The position numbers and the translations under genes were made by a program. Source: Anaeramoeba ignava BMAN (lineage: Eukaryota; Protista; Anaeramoebae). From it: a DNA stretch of 64,000 nucleotides. The stretch's first letter is position 1. Each line of letters opens with the position of its first letter. Where the stretch lies: positions 118,564 through 182,563 of the forward strand of contig JAPDFW010000115.1 in the NCBI GenBank assembly GCA_028826165.1. The letters run 5' to 3'. Of the stretch, positions 4,922-62,970 are shown piece by piece. The notes below the pieces were generated by a model. That model was not told where the DNA came from, made no database searches, and saw nothing but the letters and a program-made list of their open reading frames with translations.

Positions 4922-4923
4922 CT

Positions 4924-7805
4924 AAGCAAAAAAAGGAATTTTATTTATAATTTTTTTAATATTATTTTAATTTTTTTAATATTATTTTATTTTTTTTAAT
5001 ATTGATTTTAATTTTGATTTTGATTTTGATTTTGATTTTGATTTTGATTTTGATTTTGATTTTGATTTTGATTTTAATTTTAATTTTGATTTTGATTTTG
5101 ATTTTAATTTTGATTTTAATTTTAATTTTGATTTTTATTTTGATTTTTATTTTGATTTTAATTTTAATTTTAATTTTGATTTTTTTAATTTTAATTTTAA
5201 TTTTAATTTTAATTTTTAATTTTTAATTTTATTTATATTTTTATTTATATTTTAATTTATATTTTAATTTTATAATTTAATTTATAATTTTATTTTAATT
5301 TTATAATTTTATTTTATTTAATTTAATTTATAATTTAATTTATAATTTTATTTATAATTTTATTTATAATTTTATTTTAATTTTTTAATTTATAATTTAT
5401 TTATAATTTAATTTATAATTTAATTTATAATTTTATTTATAATTTTATTTATAATTTTATTTATAATTTTATTGAATTTATTTATAATTTAATTTATAAT
5501 TTTATTTATAATTTTTTATAATTTATTTTTAATTTTTATTTATAATTTTATTTATAATTTTATTTATAATTTTATTTATAATTTTATTTTAATTTAATTT
5601 ATAATTTTATTTATAATTTTATTTATAATTTTATTTATAATTTTATTTATAATTTTATTTATAATTTAATTTTATTTTATTTATAATTTCAATTTTTTAA
5701 TTTATAATTTTATTTATAATTTTATTTATTTAATTTATAATTTTATTTATAATTTTTATTTATAATTTTATTTATAATTTTATTTATAATTTTATTTATA
5801 ATTTTAATTTATAATTTTATTTATAATTTTATTTATAATTTTTATTTATAATTTTATTTATAATTTTATTTATAATTTTATTTATAATTTTATTTATTTT
5901 TATTTTTAATTTTTATTTATAATTTTATTTATAATTTTATTTATAATTTTATTTATATTTTATTTATAATTTTATTTATAATTTTATTTATAATTTTATT
6001 TATAATTTAATTTATAATTTTATTTATAATTTTTATTTATAATTTAATTTATAATTTTATTTATAATTTTATTTAATTTTATTTATAATTTTATTTATAA
6101 TTTTATTTTAATTTTTATTTATAATTTTATTTATAATTTTATTTTTTTTATTTTTATAATTTTATTTATTTATTTTATTTTAATTTTTATTTATAATTTT
6201 ATTTATATTTTATTTATAATTTTATTTATAATTTTTAATTTATAATTTTATTTATAATTTTAATTTATTTTAATTTTTATTTTTTTATAATTTTATTTAT
6301 AATTTTATTTATAATTTTATTTATAATTTTATTTATAATTTAATTTATAATTTATAATTTTATTTTATTATTTTTGTAATTTATAATTTAATTTATAATT
6401 TTATTTATAATTTTATTTATAATTTTAATTTTATTTTAATTTTTATTTATAATTTTATTTATAATTTTATTTATAATTTTTATTTATAATTTATTTTATT
6501 TATATTTTTTTAATTTTATTTTAATTTATTTATAATTTTATTTATAATTTTTATTTTTAATTTTATTTTATTTAATTTTTATTTATAATTTTAATTTTTA
6601 TTAATTTTTAATTTTATATAATTTTATTTTAATTTTATTTATAATTTTATTTATAATTTTATTTATAATTTTAATTTATAATTTTTATTTATAATTTTTA
6701 TTTATAATTTTTATTTATAATTTTATTTATAATTTTATTTATAATTTTATTTATATTTTATTTTATAATTTTATTTATTTTTTATTTATAAATTTTTATT
6801 TATAATTTTATTTTATAATTTTATTTATATTTAATTTATATTTATAATTTTATTTATAATTTAATTTATAATTTTATTTTATAATTTTATTTATAATTTA
6901 ATTTATAATTTTAATTTATAATTTTATTTATTTATTTTATTTATTTAATTTAATTTAAATTTATAATTTTAATTTTATTTTTAATTTATAATTTTATTTA
7001 TAATTTAATTTATAATTTTTAATTTATAATTTTATTTATAATTTGATTTTATTTTTATTTATAATTTTATTTATAATTTATTTATATTTTATTTTATTTT
7101 TTTATAATTTTATTTATAATTTTATTTATAATTTTAATTTATAATTTTATTTATAATTTAATTTATAATTTTATTTATAATTTTAATTTATAATTTAATT
7201 TATAATTTTTTTATTTAATTTAATTTATAATTTAATTTTTAATTTTAATTTATATTTTTAATTTATAATTTTTTATAATTTTTATTTATAATTTAATTTT
7301 TATTAATTTTTAATTTTAATTTTATTTATAATTTTATTTTTTAATTTTATTTATAATTTTATTTATAATTTTATTTATAATTTTATTTTTTATTTATATT
7401 TATTTTTAATTTTAATTTTATTTTTTTTTATTTTTATTTTAATTTTATTTTTTATTTTTATTTTTATTTTTTATTTATAATTTAATTTTATAATTTAATT
7501 TATAATTTTTATTTATAATTTTATTTATAGTTTAATTTATAATTTTATTTATATTTTAATTTGTAATTTTATTTATAATTTTATTTATAATTTAATTTAT
7601 AATTTTATTTATAATTTTTATTTATATTTTGGTTTTATTTATAATTTAATTTATAATTTTATTTATAATTTTATTTATAATTTTATTTATAATTTAATTT
7701 ATAATTTAATTTATAATTTTATTTATAATTTTATTTATAATTTAATTTATAATTTTATTTATAATTTAATTTATAATTTTATTTATAATTTAATTTATAA
7801 TTTTA
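4924..7805. repeat. Intronic simple-repeat tract: (ATTTTG/ATTTTA)n then 12-mer (ATAATTTTATTT)n, ~2.9 kb, almost no G/C
   Basis: Directly visible; lies between the acceptor at 4922-4923 and the putative first exon of the E3 ligase. Confidence 0.95.
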
Positions 7806-8239
7806 TAAATGGTTGTGTTTTGTAAGTTGATATTGTAAAATTTCACATTTAAAAATAATAAAAAGTGTATTAAATAAAAAAGAGAGAAAAATATTTTATG
7901 TTTTAAAAATTTTAGAATTTTTTACAATTGTTTTTGTTTGTGAAAGAATTTTAATTTTCATTTTTATAAAGAAAAAAATAAAAAAAATAAAAAAAATAGA
8001 AATGAGAAAAATGAAAAAATTAAATTTAAAAAAATTAAAAAATTAAATAAAGAACTTTTTTCTTTTTTCTTTTTTATTGTTGTTTATTGATGTTTCTTTT
8101 ATTGTTTATTGTGTTTTTTTCTTACTTTCTTTTTTCTAAAAAAAATTTGAAAAAAAAAACATTGAAAATAGGAACATTTTTATTTTAAAAAAAAAAAACT
8201 TTTTATCAATCTAATTAGTTAAGCAAATTCCGAATAAAA

Positions 8240-11420: not shown

Positions 11421-14400
11421 AAATACATTTTGAATTAATTTATAAATAATATTTATTAATTAATATTAAATTAAATATTAAATTAATATTTATTTAAATT
11501 ATTAAATAAAATTAAATAAAAAAAAGTGGAATAAATAAATAAAATACTTTTTGATAATTTTATATAAATAAATAGAATAAATAAATAAATAAATACATTT
11601 TGAATTAAATTATAAATAATATTTATTAATTAATATTAAATTAAATATTAAATTAATATTTATATAAATTATTAAATAAAATTAAATAAAAAGTGGAATA
11701 AATAAATAAAAATATTTTTGATAATTTTATATAAATAAATAGAATAAATAAATAAATAAATACATTTTTGAATTAATTTATAAATAATATTTATTAATTA
11801 ATATTAAATTAAATATTAATTTAATATTTATATAAATTATTAAATAAAAATTAAATAAAAAGTGGAATAAATAAATAAAATATTTTTAATAATTTTATAT
11901 AAATAAATAGAATAAATAAATATATAAATATATTTTGAATTAATTTATAAATAATATTTATTAATTAATATTAAATTAAATATTAAATTAATATTTATTT
12001 AAATTATTAAATAAAATTAAATAAAAAAAGTGGAATAAATAAATAAAAATATTTTTAATAATTTTATATAAATAAATAGAATAAATAAATATATAAATAT
12101 ATTTTTGAATTAATTTATAAATAATATTTATTAATTGATATTAAATTAAGTATTAAATTAATATTAATATAAATTATTAAATAAAATTAAATAAAAAGTG
12201 GAATAAATAAATAAAATATTTTTAATAATTTTATATAAATAAATAGAATAAATAAATAAATAAATATATTTTGAATTAAATTATAAATAATATTTATTAA
12301 TTAATATTAAATTAAATATTAATTTTAATATTTATATAAATTATTAAATAAAATTAAATAAAAAGTGGAATAAATAAATAAAATACTTTTTGATAATTTT
12401 ATATAAATAAATAAAATAAAAATAAACAAATAGATTTTGAATTAATTTATAAATAATATTTATTAATTAATATTAAATTAAATATTAAATTAATATTTAT
12501 TTTAAATTATTAAATAAAATTAAATAAAAAGTGGAATAAATAAATAAAATATTTTTAATAATTTTATATAAATAAATAAAATAAAAATAAATAAATACAT
12601 TTTTGAATTAATTTATAAATAATATTTATTAATTAATATTAAATTAAATATTAAATTAATATTTATATAAATTATTAAAATAAAAATTAAATAAAAAAAA
12701 GTGGAATAAATAAATAAAATATTTTTAATAATTTTATATAAATAAATAGAATAAATAAATATATAAATACATTTTGAATTAAATTATAAATAATATTTAT
12801 TAATTAATATTAAATTAAATATTAATTTAATATTTATATAAATTATTAAATAAAAATTAAATAAAAAAAAAAGTGGAATAAATAAATAAAATACTTTTTG
12901 ATAATTTTATATAAATAAATAAAATAAAAATAAACAAATAGATTTTGAATTAATTTATAAATAATATTTATTAATTAATATTAAATTAAATATTAAATTA
13001 ATATTTATTTAAATTATTAAATAAAAATTAAATAAAAAGTGGAATAAATAAATAAAATATTTTTAATAATTTTATATAAATAAATAAAATAAAAATAAAT
13101 AAATACATTTTGAATTAAATTATAAATAATATTTATTAATTAATATTAAATTAAATATTAAATTAATATTTATATAAATTATTAAATAAAATTAAATAAA
13201 AAGTGGAATAAATAAATAAAATATTTTTAATAATTTTATATAAATAAATAGAATAAAATAAAATATATAAATACATTTTTGAATTAAATTATAAATAATA
13301 TTTTATTAATTAATATTAAATTAAATATTAATTTAATATTTATTTAAATTATTAAATAAAATTAAATAAAAAGTGGAATAAATAAATAAAATATTTTTAA
13401 TAATTTTATATAAATAAATAGAATAAAATAAATATATAAATATATTTTGAATTAATTTATAAATAATATTTATTAATTAATATTAAATTAAATATTAAAT
13501 TAATATTTATTTAAATTATTAAATAAAATTAAATAAAAAGTGGAATAAATAAATAAAATATTTTTAATAATTTTTATATAAATAAATAGAATAAATAAAT
13601 AAATAAATATATTTTTGAATTAATTTATAAATAATATTTATTAATTGATATTAAATTAAGTATTAAATTAATATTAATATAAATTATTAAATAAAATTAA
13701 ATAAAAAGTGGAATAAATAAATAAAATATTTTTAATAATTTTATAAATAAATAAGAATAAATAAATATAAATATATTTTGAATTAAATTATAAATAATAT
13801 TTATTAATTAATATTAAATTAAATATTAAATTAATATTTATATAAATTATTAAATAAAAATTAAATAAAAAGTGGAATAAATAAATAAAATATTTTTAAT
13901 AATTTTATATATAAATAAATAGAATAAATAAATAAATATATTTTTGAATTAATTTTATAAATAATATTTATTAATTAATATTAAATTAAATATTAAATTA
14001 ATATTTATTTAAATTATTAAATAAAATTAAATAAAAAAAAAGTGGAATAAATAAATAAAATATTTTTGATAATTTTTATATAAATAAATAAAATAAAAAT
14101 AAATAAATACATTTTGAATTAAATTATAAATAATATTTATTAATTAATATTAAATTAAATATTAAATTAATATTTATATAAATTATTAAATAAAATTAAA
14201 TAAAAAGTGGAATAAATAAATAAAATATTTTTAATAATTTTATATAAATAAATAGAATAAATAAATATATAAATACATTTTGAATTAAAATTATAAATAA
14301 TATTTATTAATTAATATTAAATTAAATATTAAATTAATATTTATATAAATTATTAAATAAAAAAATTAAATAAAAAGTGGAATAAATAAATAAAATATTT

Positions 14401-16178
14401 TTAATAATTTTATATAAATAAATAGAATAAAAATAAATAAATACATTTTGAATTAATTTATAAATAATATTTATTAATTGATATTAAATTAAATATTAAA
14501 TTAATATTTATTTAAATTATTAAATAAAATTAAATAAAAAGTGGAATAAATAAATAAAATATTTTAATAATTTTATATAAATAAATAGAATAAATAAATA
14601 TATAAATACATTTTTGAATTAAATTATAAATAATATTTATTAATTAATATTAAATTAAATATTAATTTAATATTTATATAAATTATTAAATAAAAATTAA
14701 ATAAAAAGTGGAATAAATAAATAAAATATTTTTGATAATTTTATATAAATAAATAGAATAAATAAATAAATAAATACATTTTGAATTAAATTATAAATAA
14801 TATTTATTAATTAATATTAAATTAAATATTAAATTAATATTTATTTAAATTATTAAATAAAATTAAATAAAAAAAGTGGAATAAATAAATAAAATATTTT
14901 TTAATAATTTTATATATAAATAAATAGAATAAATAAATATATAAATACATTTTGAATTAAATTATAAATAATATTTATTAATTAATATTAAATTAAATAT
15001 TAATTTAATATTTATATAAATTATTAAATAAAATTAAATAAAAAAAAGTGGAATAAATAAATAAAAATATTTTTGATAATTTTATATAAATAAATAGAAT
15101 AAAAATAAACAAATAGATTTTGAATTAATTTATAAATAATATTTATTAATTAATATTAAATTAAATATTAAATTAATATTTATTTAAATTATTAAATAAA
15201 ATTAAATAAAAAGTGGAATAAATAAATAAAATATTTTTAATAATTTTATATAAATAAATAGAATAAATAAATATATAAATACATTTTTGAATTAAATTAT
15301 AAATAATATTTATTAATTAATATTAAATTAAATATTAAATTAATATTTATTTAAATTATTAAATAAAATTAAATAAAAAGTGGAATAAATAAATAAAATA
15401 TTTTTAATAATTTTATATAAATAAATAGAATAAATAAATATATAATATATTTTGAATTAAATTATAAATAATATTTATTAATTAATATTAAATTAAATAT
15501 TAATTTAATATTAATATAAATTATTAAATAAAATTAAATAAAAAGTGGAATAAATAAATAAAATACTTTTTGATAATTTTATATAAATAAATAGAATAAA
15601 TAAATAAATAAATATATTTTGAATTAAATTATAAATAATATTTATTAATTAATATTAAATTAAATATTAAATTAATATTATTTAAATTATTAAATAAAAT
15701 TAAATAAAAAAAAGTGGAATAAATAAATAAAATATTTTTAATAATTTTATATAAATAAATAGAATAAATAAATAAATAAATACATTTTGAATTAATTTAT
15801 AAATAATATTTATTAATTGATATTAAATTAAATATTAAATTAATATTTATTTAAATTATTAAATAAAATTAAATAAAAAAAAGTGGAATAAATAAATAAA
15901 ATATTTTTAATAATTTTATATAAATAAATAAAATAAATAAATATATAAATATATTTTGAATTAATTTATAAATAATATTTATTAATTAATATTAAATTAA
16001 ATATTAAATTAATATTTATTTAAATTATTAAATAAAATTAAATAAAAAAAAGTGGAATAAATAAATAAAATATTTTTGATAATTTTATATAAATAAATAA
16101 AATAAATAAATATATAAATACATTTTGAATTAAATTATAAATAATATTTATTAATTGATATTAAATTAAATATTAATT
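11421..16178. repeat. Tandem satellite, ~168-bp unit, ~28 copies
   Basis: The marker AAAAGTGGAATAAATAAATAAAATA recurs 28 times between ~11525 and ~16052 (mean spacing ~168 bp). Units differ by homopolymer length and a few substitutions. Confidence 0.96.
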
Positions 16179-45734: not shown

Positions 45735-48700
45735 TTAAATATCTAAATCAAGTTCAAGTTCTTGTGCTTCTTTGATTTTTTTTCTTGGATTTTTGGATTT
45801 GTTTCTTTTTTTCTTCTTATATAGAATAACTCCAATAATAATTGCTGAAATAACAAGAATAGGAATAACTACTCCAAGTGCTATTGCTGTTGTGTTTGTT
45901 GAATTATCACTTGCTTGATTTGGAGATGATATTGTAATTGATGTTGTTGAATTAATTCCTGAATATTCATTAAATGAACAATTTAAATCAGCTGATGAAT
46001 AAATTGAAATTTCATAATATTCTCCTCCTTGTAATCCTGTAACTGAATAATCTGTTGTTAAATTTGTTAAACAAATTGAAGTTGAATTATAATTGAATGA
46101 ATATGCTTTTAATCCACTTGATAAAATTAATGAATTCCAACTACACTCAAATCCATTAATTAATGAATTACAATTTAATGAAGTAATATTTCCTAATTTA
46201 GCTCTTGTTGGATTAATTGAACTAGGTAATCCTAAACATGGTGTTTCACAATTCAAATCTGAACATCCTCGAATTGAAATATTATATTCAATATTTCCTG
46301 ATATTCCACTTATAGTTCCAATAGCTTCATTTCCACTTAAATCAAGAGATGTAAACTTTTGCCAATTTGTTCCATTATCAAGTGAAATTGAATAATTATT
46401 TGCATTTGTTAATTTTGTGAAATTAAATTCAATTTCTTCAATTTTAGAAATTGTTTCATAAATTGTTGGAGCAGGTAAAATATCAGTTGTAATTGATGTT
46501 GTTGAATTAATTCCTGAATATTCATTAAATGAACAATTTAAATCAGCTGATGAATAAATTGAAATTTCATAATATTCTTCTCCTTGTAACCCTGTGACTG
46601 AATAATCTGTTGTTAAATTTGTTAAACAAATTGAAGTTGAATTATAATTGAATGAATATGCTTTTAATCCACTTGATAAAATTAATGAATCCCAACTACA
46701 TTCAAATCCATTAATTAATGAAGAACAATTTAATGAAGTAATATTTCCTAATTTAGCTCTTGCTGGATTAATTGAACTAGGTAATCCTAAACATGGTGTT
46801 TCACAATTTAAATCTGAACATCCTCGAATTGAAATATTATATTCAATATTTCCTGATATCCCACTTATGATTCCAATAACTTCATTTCCACTTAAATCAA
46901 GAGATGTAAACTTTTGCCAATTTGTTCCATTATCAAGTGAAATTGAATAATTATTAGCATTTGTTAATTTTGTGAAATTAAATTCAATTTCTTCAATTTT
47001 AGAAATTGTTTCATAAATTGTTGGAGCTGGTAAAATATCAGTTGTAATTGATGTTGTTGAATTAATTCCTGAATATTCATTAAATGAACAATTTAAATCA
47101 GCTGATGAATAAATTGAAATTTCATAATATTCTTCTCCTTGTAACCCTGTAACTGAATAATCTGTTGTTAAATTTGTTAAACAAATTGAAGTTGAATTAT
47201 AATTGAATGAATATGCTTTTAATCCACTTGATAAAATTAATGAATCCCAACTACATTCAAATCCATTAATTAATGAAGAACAATTTAATGAAGTAATATT
47301 TCCTAATTTAGCTCTTGTTGGATTAATTGAACTAGGTAATCCTAAATATGGTGTTTCACAATTTAAATCAACACATCCTCGAATTGAAATATTATATTCA
47401 ATATTTCCTGATATTCCACTTATGATTCCAATAGCTTCATTTCCACTTAAATCAAGAGATGTAAACTTTTGCCAATTTGTTCCATTATCAAGTGAAATTG
47501 AATAATTATTTGCATTTGTTAATTTTGTGAAATTAAATTCAATTTCTTCAATTTTGGAAATTGTTTCATAAATTGTTGGAGCTGTTAAATTATCAGTTGT
47601 AACTGAAATTGTTGAAATATATCCACATTTATCATTTGAATCACATGCCGATACATTGATTTGATATTCTTGATTTGGGAATTGAGCTGTGAATTGTTGA
47701 TTTGTTGATGTTGGTTGATAATTTCCAGAATCATTTTGAGAAATTGATTGATAAGTAAAATTATAATAAGATGGAATTGAACAATTAATTGGTTGATTCC
47801 AATTACAATTAATATCTATTGTATTTGAAATTGAACATGTTAAACTTGTAACTTCTCCAAATATTAATGAAATTGATGATTCAACAATTTCTCCTTTATC
47901 ATCTCCTTCACATTCATGTGTTCTACATCCACAAATTGAAATATTATAATCATTCCCACATTCTAAATTATTCAAAAGATAATCAAGTGAAGAATTATCA
48001 ACTGAAATGAAAGATATTAAATCAGGTTGAGATTGAGTGAGATAAGAAAGATTATAATGATCAAGATGAGCAATTCCTCCATTGATCTGAACATTTGGAT
48101 AATTCCAAGTAACATTAATTGAATAATTTGAAGGATTTGATAATTGGAAATCATTTACAGAATCAATTTTTGTTGTTAAATTAACAAAAGAAGAAGGTTC
48201 ACCACATATCATTGTTGCATTACCACAAGCTTTGATTTGAATTGGATAATATTCATTTCCTGTAATATTATCATAAGTTGAAGAATTAAATTGTTGATAA
48301 TAAACATTCCCATCTTCAAGAATTGGAGAATCAATATCAATCCAATCATATCCATAATTGATTTGATAAATCAAATTTGGAATTTGAATTTCATCCCAAT
48401 AACAATCAAATGATGAAAACAAAGATGAGCAATTAACAATATTAACTTGAGGAATTAAAAAAGCTTCATAAACAAATGCTTTATTAGTCCACTGCGTTCC
48501 AACAACAGTAAAATTCCCATAAATTGAAACAGAAATTCCAAAATCTGAAGATGATTGAGTTAAATTTTGTTCTTCATTCCAAATTGTTCCATTATATCTG
48601 TAAACAAATGCTTGTTTTGTATCATAAGCACCAACACCAATAACATCTCCATAAACTGAAACACTCCATCCAAAACTTGAAGATGAAGGTCCAGTTAAAA

Positions 48701-49544
48701 TTTGTTCTTCATTCCAATTTGCTTCATTATATCTGTAAATAAATGCTTGTTCTCCAGAATCAGCACCAACAACAAGAACATCTCCATCAACTGAAACGCT
48801 TATTCCAAAATCTGACCATCCAGGTCCACTTAAAACTTGTTCTTGATTCCAAATTGATCCATCGTATCTGTAAATATATGCTTGATCTGAACCAGAAGCT
48901 CCAACAACAGTGACATTATCATAAACCGAAACACTTATTCCAAAACTGAAAACTGAACCTTCGTTGATATTTTGATCAAGATTCCAATCTGTCCCATTAT
49001 ATCTGTAAATGAATACTTGTCTTCCTTCATCAGTCCCAATAGCAGTAACATTCCCATGAATTGAAACACTCCATCCAAAATTTGTAATCACTTCATTGAG
49101 AAATTTTTCTTCGTTCCAATATGTTCCATTATATCTGTAAATAAATACTTGATTTGCATAATACGCTCCAATAACAGTAACATTTTCATAAACTGAAACA
49201 CTTATTCCAAAGCCTGTATCCGTGGGTGTGGAGAAATTTTGTTCAAGATTAAAATTTGTTCCATTATATCTGTAAATAAATGCTTGATTTTCATGATCAT
49301 CTCCTACAACAAGAACATCTTTATAAACTGAAACAGAAGATCCAAAATATGGTGGACCTATGATTGTATCAAATAAACTCCAAAACCAAGCTTCATCTGG
49401 AGTAGAATAATATCTTGTTGTTCCTGTTAATCTTTCTGTTTCTATTGATGAAATTACTGATGAAATTGTTTTTTGATCAGTTTGAATTGATTGAATTAAG
49501 AAAATATTAAGAATTAAGAAAAAAAAGAAAAGAATTGATTTCAT
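45735..49544 (-). CDS. Type I surface receptor, copy A: signal peptide, 7 FG-GAP-like propeller blades, FN3-like stalk with 3 x 185-aa repeats, TM, short basic tail
   Basis: Intronless 1269-aa ORF. Seven FG.SVS....V.V.G...Q.FIYRYNG..W..EQ units; FN3-like motifs (W..P...G..HY.LSY, Y.ISI); 555-nt triple repeat; TM AIALGVVIPILVISAIIIGVILY followed by KKKKR. Confidence 0.9.
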   Translation of the reverse strand: MKSILFFFFLILNIFLIQSIQTDQKTISSVISSIETERLTGTTRYYSTPDEAWFWSLFDTIIGPPYFGSSVSVYKDVLVVGDDHENQAFIYRYNGTNFNLEQNFSTPTDTGFGISVSVYENVTVIGAYYANQVFIYRYNGTYWNEEKFLNEVITNFGWSVSIHGNVTAIGTDEGRQVFIYRYNGTDWNLDQNINEGSVFSFGISVSVYDNVTVVGASGSDQAYIYRYDGSIWNQEQVLSGPGWSDFGISVSVDGDVLVVGADSGEQAFIYRYNEANWNEEQILTGPSSSSFGWSVSVYGDVIGVGAYDTKQAFVYRYNGTIWNEEQNLTQSSSDFGISVSIYGNFTVVGTQWTNKAFVYEAFLIPQVNIVNCSSLFSSFDCYWDEIQIPNLIYQINYGYDWIDIDSPILEDGNVYYQQFNSSTYDNITGNEYYPIQIKACGNATMICGEPSSFVNLTTKIDSVNDFQLSNPSNYSINVTWNYPNVQINGGIAHLDHYNLSYLTQSQPDLISFISVDNSSLDYLLNNLECGNDYNISICGCRTHECEGDDKGEIVESSISLIFGEVTSLTCSISNTIDINCNWNQPINCSIPSYYNFTYQSISQNDSGNYQPTSTNQQFTAQFPNQEYQINVSACDSNDKCGYISTISVTTDNLTAPTIYETISKIEEIEFNFTKLTNANNYSISLDNGTNWQKFTSLDLSGNEAIGIISGISGNIEYNISIRGCVDLNCETPYLGLPSSINPTRAKLGNITSLNCSSLINGFECSWDSLILSSGLKAYSFNYNSTSICLTNLTTDYSVTGLQGEEYYEISIYSSADLNCSFNEYSGINSTTSITTDILPAPTIYETISKIEEIEFNFTKLTNANNYSISLDNGTNWQKFTSLDLSGNEVIGIISGISGNIEYNISIRGCSDLNCETPCLGLPSSINPARAKLGNITSLNCSSLINGFECSWDSLILSSGLKAYSFNYNSTSICLTNLTTDYSVTGLQGEEYYEISIYSSADLNCSFNEYSGINSTTSITTDILPAPTIYETISKIEEIEFNFTKLTNANNYSISLDNGTNWQKFTSLDLSGNEAIGTISGISGNIEYNISIRGCSDLNCETPCLGLPSSINPTRAKLGNITSLNCNSLINGFECSWNSLILSSGLKAYSFNYNSTSICLTNLTTDYSVTGLQGGEYYEISIYSSADLNCSFNEYSGINSTTSITISSPNQASDNSTNTTAIALGVVIPILVISAIIIGVILYKKKKRNKSKNPRKKIKEAQELELDLDI
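45925..47600. repeat. Three tandem 555-bp coding repeats in copy A (mirrored at ~51135-52810 in copy B)
   Basis: The antisense shadow ORFs recur every 555 bp (46093/46648/47203; 51302/51857). Confidence 0.93.
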
Positions 49545-50943: not shown

Positions 50944-53900
50944 TTAAATATCTAAATCAAGTTCAAGTTCTTGTGCTTCTTTGATTTTTTTTCTTGGATT
51001 TTTGGATTTGTTTCTTTTTTTCTTCTTATATAGAATAACTCCAATAATAATTGCTGAAATAACAAGAATAGGAATAACTACTCCAAGTGCTATTGCTGTT
51101 GTGTTTGTTGAATTATCACTTGCTTGATTTGGAGATGATATTGTAATTGATGTTGTTGAATTAATTCCTGAATATTCATTAAATGAACAATTTAAATCAG
51201 CTGATGAATAAATTGAAATTTCATAATATTCTCCTTCATTTAACCCTGTAACTGAATAATCTGTTGTTAAATTTGTTAAACAAATTGAAGTTGAATTATA
51301 ATTGAATGAATATGCTTTTAATCCACTTGATAAAATTAATGAATCCCAACTACATTCAAATCCATTAATTAATGAATTACAATTTAATGAAGTAATATTT
51401 CCTAATTTGGCTCTTGTTGGATTAATTGAACTAGGTAATCCTAAACATGGTGTTTCACAATTCAAATCTGAACATCCTCGAATTGAAATATTATATTCAA
51501 TATTTCCTGATATTCCACTTATAGTTCCAATAGCTTCATTTCCACTTAAATCAAGAGATGTAAACTTTTGCCAATTTGTTCCATTATCAAGTGAAATTGA
51601 ATAATTATTAGCATTTGTTAATTTTGTGAAATTAAATTCAATTTCTTCAATTTTGGAAATTGTTTCATAAATTGTTGGAGCTGGTAAAATATCAGTTGTA
51701 ACTGAAATTGTTGAATTAATTCCTGAATATTCATTAAATGAACAATTTAAATCAGCTGATGAATAAATTGAAATTTCATAATATTCTTCTCCTTGTAACC
51801 CTGAAACTGAATAAATTGTTGTTAAATTTGTTAAACAAATTGAAGTTGAATTATAATTGAATGAATATGCTTTTAATCCACTTGATAAAATTAATGAATC
51901 CCAACTACATTCAAATCCATTAATTAATGAAGAACAATTTAATGAAGTAATATTTCCTAATTTAGCTCTTGCTGGATTAATTGAACTAGGTAATCCTAAA
52001 CATGGTGTTTCACAATTCAAATCTGAACATCCTCGAATTGAAATATTATATTCAATATTTCCTGATATTCCACTTATGATTCCAATAGCTTCATTTCCAC
52101 TTAAATCAAGAGATGTAAACTTTTGCCAATTTGTTCCATTATCAAGTGAAATTGAATAATTATTAGCATTTGTTAATTTTGTGAAATTAAATTCAATTTC
52201 TTCAATTTTAGAAATTGTTTCATAAATTGTTGGAGCTGGTAAAATATCAGTTGTAATTGATGTTGTTGAATTAATTCCTGAATATTCATTAAATGAACAA
52301 TTTAAATCAGCTGATGAATAAATTGAAATTTCATAATATTCTTCTCCTTGTAACCCTGTAACTGAATAATCTGTTGTTAAATTTGTTAAACAAATTGAAG
52401 TTGAATTATAATTAAATGAATATGCTTTTAATCCACTTGATAAAATTAATGAATCCCAACTACATTCAAATCCATTAATTAATGAATTACAATTTAATGA
52501 AGTAATATTTCCTAATTTAGCTCTTGTTGGATTAATTGAACTAGGTAATCCTAAATATGGAGTTTCACAATTTAAATCAACACATCCTCGAATTGAAATA
52601 TTATATTCAATATTTCCTGATATTCCACTTATGATTCCAATAGCTTCATTTCCACTTAAATCAAGAGATGTAAACTTTTGCCAATTTGTTCCATTATCAA
52701 GTGAAATTGAATAATTATTTGCATTTGTTAATTTTGTGAAATTAAATTCAATTTCTTCAATTTTGGAAATTGTTTCATAAATTGTTGGAGCTGTTAAATT
52801 ATCAGTTGTAACTGAAATTGTTGAAATATATCCACATTTATCATTTGAATCACATGCCGATACATTGATTTGATATTCTTGATTTGGGAATTGAGCTGTA
52901 AATTGTTGATTTGTTGAAGTTGGTTGATAATTTCCAGAATCATTTTGAGAAATTGATTGATAAGTTAAATTATAATAAGATGGAATTGAACAATTAATTG
53001 GTTGATTCCAATTACAATTAATATCTATTGTATTTGAAATTGAACATGTTAAACTTGTAACTTCTCCAAATATTAATGAAATTGATGATTCAACAATTTC
53101 TCCTTTATCATCTCCTTCACATTCATGTGTTCTACATCCACAAATTGAAATATTATAATCATTCCCACATTCTAAATTATTCAAAAGATAATCAAGTGAA
53201 GAATTATCAACTGAAATGAAAGATATTAAATCAGGTTGAGATTGAGTGAGATAAGAAAGATTATAATGATCAAGATGAGCAATTCCTCCATTGATCTGAA
53301 CATTTGGATAATTCCAAGTAACATTAATTGAATAATTTGAAGGATTTGATAATTGGAAATCATTTACAGAATCAATTTTTGTTGTTAAATTAACAAAAGA
53401 AGAAGGTTCACCACATATCATCGTTGCATTACCACAAGCTTTGATTTGAATTGGATAATATTCATTTCCTGTAATATTATCATAAGTTGAAGAATTAAAT
53501 TGTTGATAATAAACATTCCCATCTTCAAGAATTGGAGAATCAATATCAATCCAATCATATCCATAATTGATTTGATAAATCAAAGTTAAAGAAAATTCAA
53601 TTTCATCCCAATAACAATCAAATGATGAAAACAAAGATGAACAATTAACAATATTAACTTGAGGAATTAAAAAAGCTTCATAAACAAATACTTGATTTTG
53701 ATCATACGTTCCAACAACAGTAAAATTCCCATAAATTGAAACATAATTTCCAAATTCTGAAACAGAAGGTTCATTGAAAATTTCTTCTTGATTCCAAATT
53801 GTTCCATTATATCTGTAAACAAATGCTTGTTTTCCAGTAAAAGTTCCAACAATAAGAACATCTCCATAAACCGAATTAGAATAACCAAAATCTGTATCTG

Positions 53901-54750
53901 ATTTACTCAAAATTTGTTCTTGATTCCAAACTGATCCATTATATCTGTAAACAAATGTTTCATTTTGATCATAAGCCCCAACAAGAAGAACATCTTCATC
54001 AATTGAAAGACTTATTCCAAAACTTATAGGTGATTCAGTCAAATTTTGTTCTAGATTCCAATATGTTCCATTGTATCTGTAAATAAATACTTGATTTTGA
54101 CCATAAGTCCCAACAACAGTAACATTCCCAGAAACTGAAACACTTATTCCAAAACCGAAAATTGAACCTTCAATGATATTTTGATCAAGATTCCAATCTG
54201 TCCCATTATATCTGTAAATGGATACTTGATTTGCATTAGGATCTCCAACAACAATAACATTCCCAGAAACTGAAATAGCCGATCCAAAAGTTGGAGTTGC
54301 TTGACTTAAAACTTGTTCTTGATTCCAAATTGATCCATTATATCTGTAAACAAAAACTTGGCTTGTATCAGAATTACCAACAACAGTAACATTCCCAGAA
54401 ACTGAAACAGAAGATCCAAAATTTGAAACTGATTCAGTTAAATTTTGTTCAAGATTAAAATTTGTTCCATTATATCTGTAAATAAATGTTTGATTTGCTT
54501 GACATGCACCAATAACAAGAACATCTCCAGAAATTGAAACAGAAGATCCAAAATTTCCTGAACCTGAAAAATTATCAAATAAATTCCAAAACCAACCTTC
54601 ATCTGGAGTAGAATAATATCTTGTTGTTCCTGTTAATCTTTCTGTTTCTATTGATGAAATTACTGATGAAATTGTTTTTTGATCAGTTTGAATTGATTGA
54701 ATTAAGAAAATATTAAGAATTAAGAAAAAAAAGAAAAGAATTGATTTCAT
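50944..54750 (-). CDS. Type I surface receptor, copy B (paralog of 45735-49544)
   Basis: Intronless 1268-aa ORF with the same architecture. First 51 aa and TM/tail identical, stalk near-identical, propeller divergent. Confidence 0.9.
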   Translation of the reverse strand: MKSILFFFFLILNIFLIQSIQTDQKTISSVISSIETERLTGTTRYYSTPDEGWFWNLFDNFSGSGNFGSSVSISGDVLVIGACQANQTFIYRYNGTNFNLEQNLTESVSNFGSSVSVSGNVTVVGNSDTSQVFVYRYNGSIWNQEQVLSQATPTFGSAISVSGNVIVVGDPNANQVSIYRYNGTDWNLDQNIIEGSIFGFGISVSVSGNVTVVGTYGQNQVFIYRYNGTYWNLEQNLTESPISFGISLSIDEDVLLVGAYDQNETFVYRYNGSVWNQEQILSKSDTDFGYSNSVYGDVLIVGTFTGKQAFVYRYNGTIWNQEEIFNEPSVSEFGNYVSIYGNFTVVGTYDQNQVFVYEAFLIPQVNIVNCSSLFSSFDCYWDEIEFSLTLIYQINYGYDWIDIDSPILEDGNVYYQQFNSSTYDNITGNEYYPIQIKACGNATMICGEPSSFVNLTTKIDSVNDFQLSNPSNYSINVTWNYPNVQINGGIAHLDHYNLSYLTQSQPDLISFISVDNSSLDYLLNNLECGNDYNISICGCRTHECEGDDKGEIVESSISLIFGEVTSLTCSISNTIDINCNWNQPINCSIPSYYNLTYQSISQNDSGNYQPTSTNQQFTAQFPNQEYQINVSACDSNDKCGYISTISVTTDNLTAPTIYETISKIEEIEFNFTKLTNANNYSISLDNGTNWQKFTSLDLSGNEAIGIISGISGNIEYNISIRGCVDLNCETPYLGLPSSINPTRAKLGNITSLNCNSLINGFECSWDSLILSSGLKAYSFNYNSTSICLTNLTTDYSVTGLQGEEYYEISIYSSADLNCSFNEYSGINSTTSITTDILPAPTIYETISKIEEIEFNFTKLTNANNYSISLDNGTNWQKFTSLDLSGNEAIGIISGISGNIEYNISIRGCSDLNCETPCLGLPSSINPARAKLGNITSLNCSSLINGFECSWDSLILSSGLKAYSFNYNSTSICLTNLTTIYSVSGLQGEEYYEISIYSSADLNCSFNEYSGINSTISVTTDILPAPTIYETISKIEEIEFNFTKLTNANNYSISLDNGTNWQKFTSLDLSGNEAIGTISGISGNIEYNISIRGCSDLNCETPCLGLPSSINPTRAKLGNITSLNCNSLINGFECSWDSLILSSGLKAYSFNYNSTSICLTNLTTDYSVTGLNEGEYYEISIYSSADLNCSFNEYSGINSTTSITISSPNQASDNSTNTTAIALGVVIPILVISAIIIGVILYKKKKRNKSKNPRKKIKEAQELELDLDI

Positions 54751-57048: not shown

Positions 57049-59471
57049 TTAAATTTTAAATTGGGAAAATTCCATTTTCTTTTTTTGAAAATCTCTCAAA
57101 TTCTTCATTTTTGGTTTTGAATTATTTTGTAAATGATTTGGTTTAAATTGATTTTTAAATTTAATTTTCTTTTTTTGATTAAAATTTGAATTCATTTCCA
57201 AATCATTTAAGGAAGAAAACCTTTTCCAAAAATTATTTGATTCCAATTCTTTCATTTTCAAAATCAACCAAATTAATTTTTCTTTTTCATTATTTTTCAT
57301 TTTTTGGAGTTTGACAATTTTTCTTTTTTTTCTACAACAACAACGATAAATTCTTTTGCGACAACAACAAAAAACACAACAAAGAATCAAACCAAAAGTA
57401 ATTCCAATTAAAGACCAATTTAAAGATTGAAAAACACTTGGTTTTTGAGTATCCAAATTTGGTATTTGATTTCTACACCATTGGAAAACTCCATTAGAAT
57501 CGAGACCATTAGTGAATCCCTTATCACAAATACAAGAGGTATTATCTTCTGTTAATTTTCCATGTGAACCACAATCAGCATAAGTATTATTTAAGAAATC
57601 AGAGATGTTCCCTGTATAAACATCCTCAGCTTCAAAATCAGACCAAGTTTCTACATATTGTGAGTTATTATTTGTATTCGAATCTAAACACACATTTGAT
57701 ATATAATTAAGGATCTCATTTCCACTGCATTCTTTAAAGGGTTCACATAAACCTGTTTGTGGATTGTAAAAATCCCTTTTATTTTCACTTGTGAAATATT
57801 TACTTGAGCAATTAACAGGAATACAACTTTGAGTTGTTTCATTGAATTCTTGATCTTCAGTGCAAGCTGGTTGGCAATATCTGATTGCTCCTCCAAGTGT
57901 TACTTCACGAGATGGACTTGTGCAAATTGGGTTATTTGAGTTCATCACAAATCCTTTTGAAAAAATATCATTTGGATCATTTGTTCCAAATCCGATTTCA
58001 TGAACTGAATCCAATCTTCCATTTTGTAGGATTGCATATGTGCAATTTCCTTCTTGATCAATAGTTGAATTTGAGTTTAAATTAAATCTAAAATTGATCA
58101 CTTCTTTTGAAGTTATGCTTTTTGATATTGATGATCCAATCTGGATTGCAGAACAATCAACTATAAATTCAGAACCTGTTTCATCTTCTGTTTTTTTCAG
58201 ATTATTCAAACAACAGTTTCTTGGTTGAATTTCAATTGTTCCATTGTAAATTGCTTCATTTTCTACATCAATAAATAAAATTCCTGAAGTTTGATTTATA
58301 AATTGAATTCCACTATCAATTACTTTAATTTGAGGAATTTCTTTTGTAAAACTTAATCCTGTTGAGCCAATTTCCATTGTGATTTGAATGAAATCTGAGC
58401 TTATATTATCACAAATAAAGCTTTCTGAAAATGTTGATGATTTCAAAGGATCTAAACTTGATAAATTTTGATTAAAATAACACCCAATTTGAGAAGAAAT
58501 GAAATTGTTTTGAAATTTGGATAATTGATTATGAATTGAGCCATTCATTACTGAAATGAGATCTTTAGGTGGACAAGTTTGTTTTTCAATATATTTTTCT
58601 TTACTGATTCCAATTTTATTGACAGAGTTGTTGAATTCATTTTTTGGAATCAAAAAAGGTTCATTATCTAAAGATAAATTTTCACTTTGAATTGCTAAAA
58701 AGAAATTTTCAAATTGGGAATAAATTGGATTCAAATTATCTGATTTAATTTGAGCTGAAATTGAATTATTTATATTTTTTTGTTCTCCTCCAATCTCCAA
58801 ATTTAAATCCCATATTTTGTCTTGTTGATTAACATGAATTTTGGTTGTCCAAATTAGAAGAGGAGAAAAAATATCAAACAAATAAAAAATACTATCATTT
58901 TGGGATAAACTAAAACATTGTGACTCACAACAAAAACAATCATTTGGACAATTATCATTTGAAATATTGTTTGATATTTGGAAAGCATTTTGGAAATTTG
59001 TTTTAAAAGAAAGTGGAAAAAAAAGTTGAGATTTTTTTTCAATTTGAATTTTGATTGGATTTTCAATATTCCATTTTCTTCCTATTGAATCAATTAAAAT
59101 ATCTTCTGAATTCAATGTTAAATTATAATTCCAATTATTTGGTTCATTAAAAATTGATAAATTCATTTGCCATTTTGAATCACATCTTTATAAAAAACAA
59201 AATTAAATTAAATTTAAATTAAATTTAAATTAAATTAAATTAAATTAAATTTAAATTAAATTAAATTAAATTAAATTTAAATTAGATTAAATTAGATTAA
59301 ATTAAATTAAGATTAAAATTGATCAATTTGATCTTTTTTTTTTGGAATAAATTTTGTTTTTTTTTTTACAAACATTGTTTCATCAGAACAAAGAATTATT
59401 TCATTTTTGGAAATAAATTCAGATTTTAATTTAATAATTAAAAAGAAGAAAAAGATTAATTTTTTGAACAT
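57049..59471 (-). CDS. Divergent HAP2/GCS1-like class II fusion protein (fusexin) with added Cys-rich/EGF stalk
   Basis: Exons 59471-59374 and 59185-57049 (GT-AG, phase 2; 744 aa). After the signal peptide, colinear HAP2-like motifs: ISKNEIILC...CDSKWQMNLSI; NPIKIQIEKKSQLFFPLSF; FCC; QCFSL...FYLFDI; PFLIPKNEF..NKIGIS....Q.C...S.HNQL. Then an Ig-like domain III, a single TM and a Cys-rich polybasic tail CCCRKRIYRCCCRKKRK. Confidence 0.78.
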
Positions 59472-59539
59472 TTTGAATAAAAATAAAAATAAAAATAAAA
59501 AATAAAAAATTTTGTTTTTTAAAGATTTAAAAAAAGTGG

Positions 59540-60048
59540 AATTTGAAAAAAAAAAAGAATTTGAATTTGATTTTGAATTTGAAAAAAAAAAAGAATTTGA
59601 TTTTGATTTTGATTTTGAATTTGAATTTTGAATTTGAATTTGATTTTGATTTTGAATTTGATTTTGATTTTGATTTTGATTTTGAATTTTGAATTTGATT
59701 TTGATTTTGAATTTGAATTTGATTTTGATTTTGAATTTGAAAAAAAAAAAGAATTTGATTTTGATTTTGAATTTGAATTTGAATTTGATTTTGATTTTGA
59801 ATTTGATTTTGATTTTGATTTTGATTTTGATTTTGATTTTGATTTTGATTTTGATTTTGAATTTGAATTTGATTTTTGATTTTGATTTTGAATTTGAATT
59901 TGAATTTGAATTTGATTTTGAATTTGATTTTGATTTTGATATTGAATTTGAATTTGATTTTTGATTTTGATTTTGATTTTGATTTTGATTTTGATTTTGA
60001 TTTTGATTTTGATTTTGATTTTGATTTTGATTTTGATTTTGATTTTGA
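59540..60048. repeat. Intergenic hexamer microsatellite (ATTTTG/AATTTG)n
   Basis: Directly visible. Confidence 0.95.
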
Positions 60049-60051
60049 AAA

Positions 60052-62970
60052 TTAATTTTTTTGATTTGTTTTGATAAATTTCTCAAAAAATTTCTTTAAT
60101 TCTGTTAATAATTCAATGGCTTGTTTACTCTTTTCTTCTTTTGCTAATTGTAATGCTGTTTTTTTCTTATCAGTTAAACATTCCATATATTTTAATTTAT
60201 TTAAAGCTACTTCTTCACTAATATTTGAACTCAAAATATCATAAAAAATTAAAAATTGGATTGAATCAATTTCATTGTTTGCAGCTGCATAATGAAGAGC
60301 TGTCCAATCTGATGGTCCTTTAATAGAATCAAGTGGAGAATTTGTTTGTGAATAATATTGTAATGAAGAAAGATGTCCAACAGATGATGCAATACAAACT
60401 GATGGATGTTTTGACCATCTTGAGAAATTTGCATATTTGATTTCATCATTTTTTTTCAAAAATGAATAAAGTCGTGCATCAAAAAATTTCTTTAAACGTT
60501 TTGAAAGTTCTTTTTCATCAATTTCTTGTTTTGTGAAAATTTCATCAATTTTTTTAAAACTTTCTTTATCCATTCTATATCTTCCAATTCCTAAACCTTC
60601 TCGTTCTTCTTCTTTCTCTTCTTCTTTCTCTTTCTCTTTCTCTTTTTTTTTTGTTTTTTCTTCTAATTGTTGTCGAGTTGTCTCAAATACTTTGTTTGTA
60701 ACATATCCAATTCCAAATCTTCTTGGATTTGGTGTTCCAGAAAATTCATAATTAGCATATCGGTATTCTTCAACAATATCGCAAAACTTATTCAATAAAT
60801 TATCCTCTTGATTATCCAAATCTTCAATCATTTCAACTCCATAATTCCATATTCTTCTTATATTCTCAGGCGAAATCTCATCAATTGAAACAGAATCAAT
60901 TTCAGGATCAAAAGGAGTAAATCTGAAATATCGATCACCAATCATATTTGTACAAATCCTATTTGTCAGATTAGCAGTAACTTGATTCTCTTGATAAAGG
61001 AAATTTTTGCTTTGTGTTAAGAATCCAATAACTCCAAGATTAGCTCTCCAATTATAAACAGGAGTTAAATTATCAGTGGATGTATTGAGTGATAGTAAAT
61101 AAGTATCATCCAGTGAATAATTACTGATATCTCTGCATGTTACCAATGCGGCTGCTGCTGGATTATTGATAATAAATCCTCCATCAACAAAAGTGATTCT
61201 TTTTCCATCATTTTTCTCCAAAGTAAGAGGCGGAAAAATTGGAGCTGCAGCTGAAGTTGCACCTGCGACATGTGCCATTTTAAAACTGGAATCATCAATC
61301 AAAGTTAATGAATAATCTTCGTTTAATCGAAATAATCCACTTTTATATGGATCTGAAATTGGATAATTTGCAAATACACATGCTCCATAATTTTCTGCTG
61401 ATGTTGTTACCATAATCCCTCTGTTCTTAATTGTATCTGTGATTGTGCATCCTCCAAATATTTTATCTAATTCTCCATCAATTCCTTTTCTTGTATAAGC
61501 TGAATATAATAGAAAATCAGGTCCATTCATAATTGGATCTAAAATTGTTCTTGAATTTGATGACCATCTTTCAAATAGTTTGTATCTTTGCTCTCCAATA
61601 TAGATATCTAATGCTTCTCTTGGTGAAAGACTAATAGGTCCTCTTGTTAATGCAAGTGATATTATCCCACCTGTTGATGTTCCAGCATAAAAATCAAAAA
61701 TATCTTGAATTCTCAAATGAGTTCTTCTTTCAATTTCTGTTAAAAGAATACAAGGAACAATTCCTCTAATTCCTCCTCCATCTATAGAAAGTATAAATTT
61801 TTTTGAAGGATCCTTTGTTTGTTTTGTTTTTGGATTGATTTCTGGTTCTTCAATAAATTTGAATTTCTTTTCTTCTTCCTTTTCTTCTTCTTTCTTTTCT
61901 TCTTCTTTCTTTTCTGGAATTATATATTTCAATACATCTTGAATCATTCCTGCTCTTTCATCTTTTGGATCTAAAAATAATAATGAATTTAATAAATTCA
62001 CAATTGACTCTTCATAATTTCCCAAATCAAATTGAATCAATGATTTCCAAATCCAACTATTTGCTTTCATTTCATTTTTTTCTTCTTCTTTTTGTTTGAC
62101 TTTTTCTTCGTTTTCAATTTCTTCTTTAGCATTCTTAAGTGTTTCTTCAATTATTTTTTTAGTAAATACATCAATATCCTCATCTTTAAATAAATTATCT
62201 AATATCCTATAAGATTGTTGATATCTTTTGTCACCAAGTAATTGTTTAGCTTCAAGTAATAACAAATTTGGGTTTTTCATCATAAACGGTTGAGGATTTC
62301 CAGTAAGTGAATTTACTATTGGAGGAATTAATCGATCTAATGTTTGGCTTTCAAGAATCTTTTTTTTCTCTTTTTTATCTTTTCCCAATATATCAAGAAC
62401 AATTAAATCAACCAATCTTTCATTATCTTTTGATTCTAATATTTCTTTTTCTTGTTTTTCACAATCTTTTCCAAAAAGATCTTCAAGATCTTTAAGTGTA
62501 ATTTTAGCTTCTAATTTATCATCTTCATTTTTCTTCTTTTTTTCAATAATTTTAGGTTTCACAATATTGAAAAATGATTCTGAGTAAATTCACTAACATT
62601 TTTGAAATTTTGTAAAAACATTTTTATTGGCTAAATCTTTTTCTAAAAATGTTTTGGATTCTTCTTTTTGTTTTAATTTAACAATAAAATTTTTTGATTG
62701 TTTTGTAAATTTCAATTTTAATTTGTTTAATTCTTTGTTTTGCCATTCTCCAACTATTTTTCTTTCATTATTTTTAATTGTAAAATTTTGATTTTGATTT
62801 TGATTTTGATTTTCATTTGTTTGATTTTCTTTTTGATTTTCTTTTTGTTTATCAAAAATTTTTTGCATTAATGATTTAAATTGAAGATCTTCTTTAAGTT
62901 TTTCAGTTAATTTCAAAAAAGAATTGTTCTTAATTTCTTCTTTGTTATTATTATTATTTTCTTGTTTCAT
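60052..62970 (-). CDS. Patatin-like phospholipase with N-terminal TPR-like helices and C-terminal ankyrin repeats
   Basis: Patatin motifs LSIDGGGIRG, GTSTG and DGG; ankyrin motifs WTALHYAAANNEIDSIQFLI and TALQLAKE. ORF 62970-62593 is in frame with ORF 62562-60052 but separated by TAG TGA (short intron or indel errors), so the 5' structure is uncertain. Confidence 0.88.

Follow-up and report, generated by a model that had tools for sequence, protein, structure and literature searches.

The window analysed here, 64,000 nucleotides from the protist Anaeramoeba ignava BMAN (Metamonada, Anaeramoebae), represents the last 64 kb of its contig (JAPDFW010000115.1, C116) in an assembly of 42.8 Mb and 147 contigs. 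On the minus strand of the window, positions 57049-59471 harbor a two-exon gene whose product is a type I membrane protein of 744 amino acids. The protein is a very divergent relative of HAP2, glycosylated and composed of three class II domains ahead of its membrane anchor. Sequence comparison identifies the gene as the A. ignava orthologue in a conserved family of HAP2/GCS1 paralogues among the fusexins, whose carriers are amoebae and flagellates. In this family, the class II scaffold is retained and the insertion surface abandoned, and a conserved stalk has been added on the extracellular side. All searches were performed with exon 2 (57424-59184 or 57052-59184, minus strand) and exon 1 (59376-59471, minus strand) separately.

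Homologues, relationship to HAP2 and predicted fold

An exhaustive phmmer search against 1.84 billion representative proteins yielded 61 homologues, 27 of them with E values of 1e-10 or below and the best full-length match with an E value of 2e-59. Many of these proteins comprise 650-800 amino acids and match from end to end. Named members originate from Anaeramoeba flamelloides, Balamuthia mandrillaris, Willaertia magna, Naegleria fowleri (FDP41_011345), Pharyngomonas kirbyi, Andalucia godoyi, Dictyostelium discoideum (DDB_G0290351) and Dictyostelium purpureum; the family ranges over three supergroups, Metamonada, Discoba and Amoebozoa. The best homologue, a protein of A. flamelloides, is 31% identical to the window protein. 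Both were paired in a quick maximum likelihood tree with a Shimodaira-Hasegawa-like approximate likelihood ratio test (SH-aLRT) value of 98, and their identity is consistent with the mean of 37% reported for proteins of A. ignava and A. flamelloides, which is why the two genes are regarded as orthologues. Further pairs were formed by Naegleria and Willaertia and by the two species of Dictyostelium, while the deep nodes were not resolved. As far as it goes, this topology fits vertical descent within the lineages. A search of the A. ignava genome did not reveal any paralogue of the window protein elsewhere. In the literature and supplements searched, neither DDB_G0290351 nor this family was found to be described. 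The only database hint of the family's nature is the UniRef name "Generative cell specific-1/HAP2 domain-containing protein", which was automatically assigned to one member of the A. flamelloides cluster.

Taken alone, the window protein did not match any Pfam family at E<=10, including PF10699 and the FF family, nor did it match any sequence of the PDB. Its BLASTP comparison with the canonical HAP2 of A. ignava (P0070) was not significant, and a PF10699 scan of the whole A. ignava genome did not pick up this locus. Of 29 family members, one lay above the PF10699 gathering score (43.8 bits), matching by its domain III, and two lay below. Homology to HAP2 over domains I to III, which escaped pairwise BLASTP, became apparent with the profile of these 29 members. 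Compared with all PDB sequences by hmmsearch, the profile gave the HAP2 proteins of Trypanosoma cruzi (5ow4, E 8e-5) and Arabidopsis thaliana (5ow3, E 0.013) as first and second matches, both collinear. In an hhalign comparison with the canonical HAP2 of A. ignava, 394 collinear columns covering domains I to III were aligned (probability 97.2%, E 3e-11). The conserved blocks follow each other in the same order, beginning with an N-terminal C...C.xK block and continuing with P.I...KS...PL, the CC motif, NKIG...C...HNQL and an Ig-like domain III. Thereafter, both proteins possess a transmembrane segment and a tail with Cys and polybasic residues. NKIG, the next Cys and HNQL are aligned with HAP2, while the Cys preceding the HNQL stretch is replaced (Ser-Ile-His-Asn-Gln-Leu).

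The structure of the exon-2 ectodomain was predicted as a monomer by AlphaFold2 on the basis of a 55-sequence alignment, with a mean predicted local distance difference test score (pLDDT) of 84 and a predicted template modelling score (pTM) of 0.61. A Foldseek comparison of this model with the PDB returned the HAP2 proteins of Arabidopsis, Chlamydomonas and Cyanidioschyzon as best matches (E 4e-18 to 4e-14), followed by Fsx1 (approximately 1e-12), alphavirus E1 and hantavirus Gc (approximately 1e-10) and EFF-1 (5e-10). The best 50 matches were all class II proteins. By VIA-align, 349 residues within model residues 1-400 were superimposed on the monomeric HAP2 of C. merolae (7s0k) with a Z score of 14.7, domain III was superimposed on domain 3 of Plasmodium berghei HAP2 (7lr4) with a Z score of 11.6 and a root mean square deviation (rmsd) of 2.1 Å over 97 residues, and a Z score of 11.0 was obtained with Fsx1 (7p4l), for which Foldseek gave an E value of 4e-13. 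The nearest cluster of the ESM Atlas is named "Protein HAPLESS 2". According to the model, the protein would possess what characterizes a fusexin, namely three beta-rich domains with class II topology, a stem and a C-terminal transmembrane segment. Thus, profile comparison and structure prediction, two independent lines of evidence, both support a class II fold and a kinship specifically with HAP2. A homotrimer of domains I and II (3 x 286 residues), calculated by ESMFold2 without the family alignment, had an uncertain fold and speaks neither for nor against trimerisation.

These data bear out the first-pass annotation of the locus in its central points. It had described a HAP2/GCS1-like fusexin, a type I protein of 744 amino acids after splicing, with the motif order of HAP2, which reappeared in the profile alignment with the canonical protein. 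Of the comparisons that it had proposed, the one with PF10699 had a mixed outcome (no match for the window protein itself, one of its relatives above the cut-off), while a monomer model compared with HAP2, EFF-1 and Fsx1 found HAP2 first.

Gene structure, domain II tip and stalk

The length of the protein follows from the codon count, 32 codons in exon 1, one split codon and 711 codons in exon 2. Exon 2 contains an unbroken 705-codon open reading frame (ORF) extending from 59166 to 57049, whose frame is open up to position 59185. Exon 1 starts with the ATG at 59471 and encodes a signal-peptide-like stretch and the first conserved Cys. In an hhalign comparison, its peptide was aligned to the family profile at positions 1-29 with its Cys matched to a Cys (E 5e-4). 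The predicted junction makes use of the only splice pair that keeps the frame, a GTTTGT donor at 59373 and an AG acceptor at 59187-59186. An alternative donor (GTAAAA), located 4 nt downstream and leading into ATG TGA, was rejected because all acceptors that can be reached from it yield a stop. The G+C content of the intron is 7.4% versus 26% in exon 2. A public protein for this locus (P0001, 705 amino acids) is identical to exon 2 from an internal Met onwards, at which it begins, and therefore lacks exon 1 with the signal peptide. The parts of the gene are as follows; residues are given in exon-2 numbering.

59374-59471, minus strand: exon 1 (98 nt) with start codon (59469-59471), signal-peptide-like stretch, first Cys and 2 nt of the split codon (sequence; hhalign E 5e-4)
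59186-59373, minus strand: intron of 188 nt, an AT microsatellite with donor GTTTGT and acceptor AAAG (only frame-keeping pair)
57049-59185, minus strand: exon 2 (2137 nt) with 1 nt of the split codon, 711 codons and the stop at 57049-57051 (ORF list; identity with P0001)
58333-59184, minus strand: class II domains I and II, residues 1-284 (AlphaFold2 pLDDT mostly >90; VIA-align; hhalign to HAP2)
58891-58980, minus strand: minimal domain II tip, residues 69-98 (AlphaFold2 model; hhalign; family alignment)
58513-58623, minus strand: equivalent of the HAP2-GCS1 motif, NKIG ... C ... HNQL, residues 188-224 (aligned with HAP2 of T. cruzi, A. thaliana and A. ignava)
57979-58332, minus strand: Ig-like domain III, residues 285-402 (VIA-align to P. 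berghei HAP2 domain 3, 7lr4)
57688-57924, minus strand: Cys-rich stalk modules, residues 421-499, with 8 Cys (family conservation; stalk model pLDDT 90-97)
57475-57573, minus strand: membrane-proximal EGF-like module, residues 538-570, CG.HG...C.C..G (weak PF23106 matches in the family; VIA-align)
57361-57417, minus strand: transmembrane helix, residues 590-608 (top Kyte-Doolittle 19-residue window, 2.3)
57052-57360, minus strand: cytoplasmic tail, a juxtamembrane Cys cluster and polybasic run followed by a low-complexity K/N-rich tail (sequence)

The most conspicuous deviation from HAP2 concerns the tip of domain II, whose lengths were counted on the hhalign alignment and the sequence of P0070. 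The bc segment, from the Glu position of strand b to the CC pair, comprises 16 residues versus 39 in the canonical HAP2 of A. ignava, and the cd segment, from the CC pair to the start of strand d, 11 versus 38. From the Glu position to strand d the whole tip has 28 residues compared to 79 in its canonical counterpart. The CC pair is followed by exactly three residues (E-S-Q) before another Cys is reached. In the model, strands c and d are connected by a two-residue Glu-Ser turn (pLDDT 92-96), and the bc connection is rich in Asn, Asp and Ser. In HAP2, the bc and cd connections have been termed "insertion hotspots", and the fusion loops are anchored by an invariant salt bridge between a Glu and an Arg of the cd connection (E126-R185 in CrHAP2; PMC6089408). 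Extended bc and cd connections with non-polar insertion elements are missing in the window protein. The same is true, by alignment, for the salt bridge, as the Glu is replaced by Gln (NAFQ instead of NAYE in the family and SEE/YEE in HAP2) and the segment bearing the Arg is absent.

Throughout the family, the segment from the CC pair to the NxT motif measures only 13-22 residues, the window protein being at the minimum. Moreover, an ORF of coding-like composition runs without a break through the tip region of the A. ignava gene. Since the short tip is common to all family members, neither a deletion in the local assembly nor an overlooked exon can be its cause. More generally, one might suspect that the locus is not a real fusexin gene at all, but a chance assembly of motifs in an AT-rich ORF, a pseudogene or an artefact with a deleted loop. 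The missing Pfam match and the insignificant BLASTP comparison with the canonical HAP2 would be compatible with such an origin, which is nevertheless extremely improbable in view of 711 open codons in a genome with 80% A+T, 61 homologues in which the Cys positions are conserved, profile and fold matches that point specifically to HAP2 and the short tip in every relative.

The tip of the window protein contains Cys residues at positions 79, 83, 85, 86 and 90. Two of them, Cys 83 and Cys 90, are extra residues beside the CC pair that occur in this protein only, which suggests an additional disulphide staple. Most family members retain the Glu of the salt bridge (NAYE) and possess aromatic residues within 5-10 residues after the CC pair.

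The second peculiarity of the protein is located between the end of domain III (approximately residue 402) and the transmembrane segment (approximately residue 590). Here, a rigid, disulphide-rich stalk of approximately 185 residues with 12 Cys is present, while the stem of the canonical A. ignava HAP2 comprises only about 50 residues in the same place. The stalk is the best conserved region of the family, its Cys, Tyr and Asp columns being invariant or nearly so. A separate model of the stalk (pLDDT 82) consists of small beta-hairpin modules, for which a comparison with solved structures did not yield a significant match (best Foldseek E 0.015). Only small modules of the EGF and TNFR type showed some resemblance (Z<=3.4); for the last module, VIA-align to EGF domains gave Z scores of 2.0-3.4 and rmsd values of 2.1-3.4 Å over 35-48 residues. 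The Teneurin-like EGF family PF23106 was matched below threshold by 14 of 29 members, though not by the window protein. The designation EGF-like for this module is reasonable but soft.

Both peculiarities had already been noticed in the first-pass annotation, which had counted about 3 residues between the CC pair and the next Cys and about 180 additional residues, Cys-rich and EGF-like, ahead of the membrane, and had found that the protein seems to lack the connection carrying the fusion loops and the conserved Arg of HAP2. The alignments with HAP2 and within the family confirm these observations and the conservation of the stalk, and they contradict a loop lost by an assembly deletion, which had been named as a possible objection. 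The assumption of a distinct fusexin subtype was extended, as a whole family of this kind exists. Taken as a whole, the interpretation given at that time is partly supported; a bilateral fusogen and a partner or adhesin would both be candidate roles.

Behind the transmembrane segment, a CCCRKR-type juxtamembrane motif (window positions 57340-57370) is nearly identical to a motif in the tail of the canonical HAP2, in the absence of any other pairwise similarity. The common motif suggests that the two proteins may share palmitoylation or sorting.

Other HAP2-like and meiosis genes and the surroundings of the locus

The canonical HAP2 gene of A. ignava is located on another contig (C137). Its product, which is listed by NCBI as "protein hapless 2 [Anaeramoeba ignava]", matches PF10699 with an E value of 5e-52 and possesses normal loops. 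A third HAP2-like gene was detected on contig C98 (47884-51444, plus strand). It comprises an ORF of at least 1186 amino acids which matches PF10699 (E 2e-19) and is similar to the canonical HAP2 (BLASTP E 2e-11) over the NKIG motif and domain III. In its product, an apparent second Ig-like domain, a transmembrane segment and a long tail on the cytoplasmic side can be recognized; the CC motif takes the form C-x-x-C, and the tip seems to be short as well. Significant similarity between this protein and the profile of the family described here was not found. The long paralogue might be likened to HgrB of Dictyostelium.

As regards meiosis, matches to MND1 (C98:157337-157516, E 8e-19) and HOP2 (TBPIP; C13:289140-289322, E 6e-15) were obtained. 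A weak match to TP6A_N (SPO11) at C104:472886-473035 turned out to be a false lead, since it lies inside a DNA polymerase B gene. The genome search did not give a match for KAR5/Tht1, but the control sequences were silent as well. According to the literature, A. ignava lacks DMC1, its sexual cycle is unknown and the meiotic toolkit of Anaeramoeba has been reported as unusual. Taken together, the three fusexin-like genes, HOP2 and MND1 argue for cell fusion and sex as components of Anaeramoeba biology. The hint of cryptic sex expressed in the first-pass annotation is backed by the canonical HAP2, HOP2 and MND1, which were found in the search that it had recommended; it follows less directly from the paralogue itself.

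The neighbours of the gene are unrelated and do not provide any functional context. They comprise an FG-GAP/fn3/LRR pair, an RCC1-BTB gene and a patatin-ankyrin gene. The pair consists of tandem genes for 1269 and 1268 amino acids (45735-49544 and 50944-54750, both on the minus strand) with FG-GAP repeats, fn3 domains and LRRs, which look like recently duplicated genes of the surface or adhesion type.

The window has a G+C content of approximately 20%, with 2-10% outside genes; this is in line with the published A. ignava BMAN genome, for which an A+T content of 80.65% overall and of 91.9% in introns has been reported. At 59313-60086 and at the canonical HAP2 locus (local positions 4905-6122), introns and spacers made up of (GATTTT)n or (AATTT)n repeats are read as pseudo-ORFs (LILILI, NQNQ, KFKI). 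Pseudo-ORFs of this kind swell mechanical ORF lists and could misguide gene callers. Positions 6001-8000 and 12001-16000 of the window are AT microsatellite deserts that are extreme even here, with only 1.6-3.7% G+C and a strong GC skew.

Possible role in cell-cell fusion

With the canonical HAP2 proteins (5ow3, 5ow4, 5mf1, 6e18, 7s0k and P0070) the window protein shares the three-domain class II fold, the order of the conserved blocks, the type I topology and the Cys-rich polybasic tail. What separates it from them is the missing PF10699 match, bc and cd connections that are in total approximately 50 residues shorter, the lack of the Glu-Arg salt bridge, the replaced Cys before HNQL and the long stalk in place of the short stem. 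HAP2 paralogues as such are not new. Lineage-specific examples are HgrB of Dictyostelium, HAP2-1/HAP2-2 of Leishmania and the second HAP2 of Plasmodium, and unspecified paralogues have been noted in Naegleria. Where tested, such paralogues were required for mating, sometimes on both partners. Like the protein described here, they are divergent relatives that coexist with a canonical HAP2. However, they represent different genes, while the present family is not lineage-specific but spans Metamonada, Discoba and Amoebozoa. What is new is a conserved fusexin subfamily with a short tip and a stalk. An identity with HgrB was rejected, since the Dictyostelium member is DDB_G0290351 and hgrB is DDB_G0281923; moreover, the HgrB-like gene on C98 is unrelated to the profile. 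To our knowledge, MatD and MatT do not occur in the type I strain AX4, whose genome encodes DDB_G0290351. Identity with these proteins was rejected on account of this strain background and not by sequence.

The nematode fusogens EFF-1 and AFF-1 resemble the window protein in having a class II fold and a short, non-hydrophobic cd loop. EFF-1 has a non-hydrophobic tip and is required on both membranes. On the other hand, a sequence relationship or membership in the FF family is not discernible, the stem of EFF-1 is flexible and devoid of a Cys-rich/EGF stalk, and in all searches the window protein was much closer to HAP2 than to EFF-1. In the archaeal Fsx1, the cd loop is likewise very short and an additional part follows domain III. 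Its loop of six residues is required for fusion, its additional domain is needed for full activity, and it acts bilaterally in baby hamster kidney (BHK) cells. Fsx1 differs by a chitin-binding-like domain IV and a six-helix bundle in domain II, neither of which was seen in the window protein, whose domain II is beta-rich in the model. Domain IV of Fsx1 and the stalk are analogous, not homologous.

By analogy with these systems, we tentatively favor the view that the protein is a fusexin which acts bilaterally and without loop insertion of the HAP2 type. It would function in the fusion of gametes or amoebae from both membranes, by trans-oligomerisation or trans-cooperation as in EFF-1/AFF-1 and Fsx1 rather than by a virus-like unilateral insertion of loops, with the conserved stalk serving as a spacer and recognition module. 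Since the complete arrangement of domains I, II and III and the transmembrane segment is kept but the HAP2-type insertion surface is lost, bilateral cell-cell fusion would be the most likely function. That these elements and a HAP2-like tail have been preserved in three supergroups suggests a continuing importance of the fold-back machinery. Furthermore, both A. ignava and D. discoideum possess a canonical HAP2 (HgrA in the latter) in addition to their family member, which points to a role that is not redundant. The protein would work beside the canonical HAP2 of the same genome instead of replacing it.

Several points weigh against this view. The loop of Fsx1, although only six residues long, is still essential for fusion; in correction of the first-pass reading, fusion is thus compatible with a short cd loop. 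The retained Glu and the aromatic residues after the CC pair may constitute a small insertion patch in the family. A rigid, Cys-rich stalk might hinder the class II fold-back. The structural basis is a predicted monomer model. Finally, the junction of exons 1 and 2 is a predicted one, and its GTTTGT donor is atypical compared with the three annotated introns of the A. ignava HAP2 gene, which open with GTATTT, GTAAAT and GTAAGT.

Nearly as likely is a non-fusogenic derivative of HAP2, which would either mediate adhesion or recognition or act on the canonical HAP2 of its own or the opposite cell as a regulator or partner, using its class II scaffold and stalk for binding. The two elements by which the HAP2 insertion surface is defined have both been lost, which points in this direction, as does the stronger conservation of the stalk than of the tip, and modules of the EGF-like kind typically serve in interactions. 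The genome already encodes a canonical HAP2 with normal loops, and in Dictyostelium a second divergent relative, HgrB, whose role is unresolved, is needed for fusion besides HgrA. By contrast, domains I to III, the transmembrane segment and the HAP2-like tail have been maintained in three supergroups, which would be more than an adhesin alone requires.

It is also conceivable, though distinctly unlikely, that the protein acts unilaterally like a conventional fusogen, its minimal, disulphide-stapled tip still inserting a few side chains into the target membrane, for instance those of Phe84 and Phe91 beside the CC pair and of hydrophobic residues of the ij loop. HAP2 of T. cruzi uses three short non-polar loops (PMC6089408), aromatic residues follow the CC pair in most family members, and Fsx1 depends for fusion on a loop of only six residues, for which reason unilateral action deserves consideration. 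However, the c-d turn of the window protein is formed by Glu-Ser, its bc connection is rich in Asn, Asp and Ser, and the salt bridge by which every HAP2 presents its loops is missing here.

Going beyond the favored bilateral reading, one may speculate that the window protein, DDB_G0290351, FDP41_011345 and the proteins of Balamuthia, Andalucia and A. flamelloides represent a second, very old fusexin lineage, which is possibly as old as the last common ancestor of eukaryotes (LECA). Its members would lack membrane-inserting loops and fuse cells bilaterally in trans, an EFF-1-like mechanism in protists, or else they would be the missing counterpart of HAP2 on the partner cell. This broader scenario is rather doubtful at present. 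HAP2 is the only broadly conserved gamete fusogen of eukaryotes, and questions that the literature still asks are whether it acts from one or from both membranes and what its counterpart on the partner cell is. A second conserved family derived from HAP2 would be a natural experiment on the parts of a class II protein that are needed for cell-cell fusion. It is directly accessible to testing because D. discoideum possesses an orthologue, DDB_G0290351, beside HgrA and HgrB, and mating, knock-outs and fusion assays are routine in this organism.

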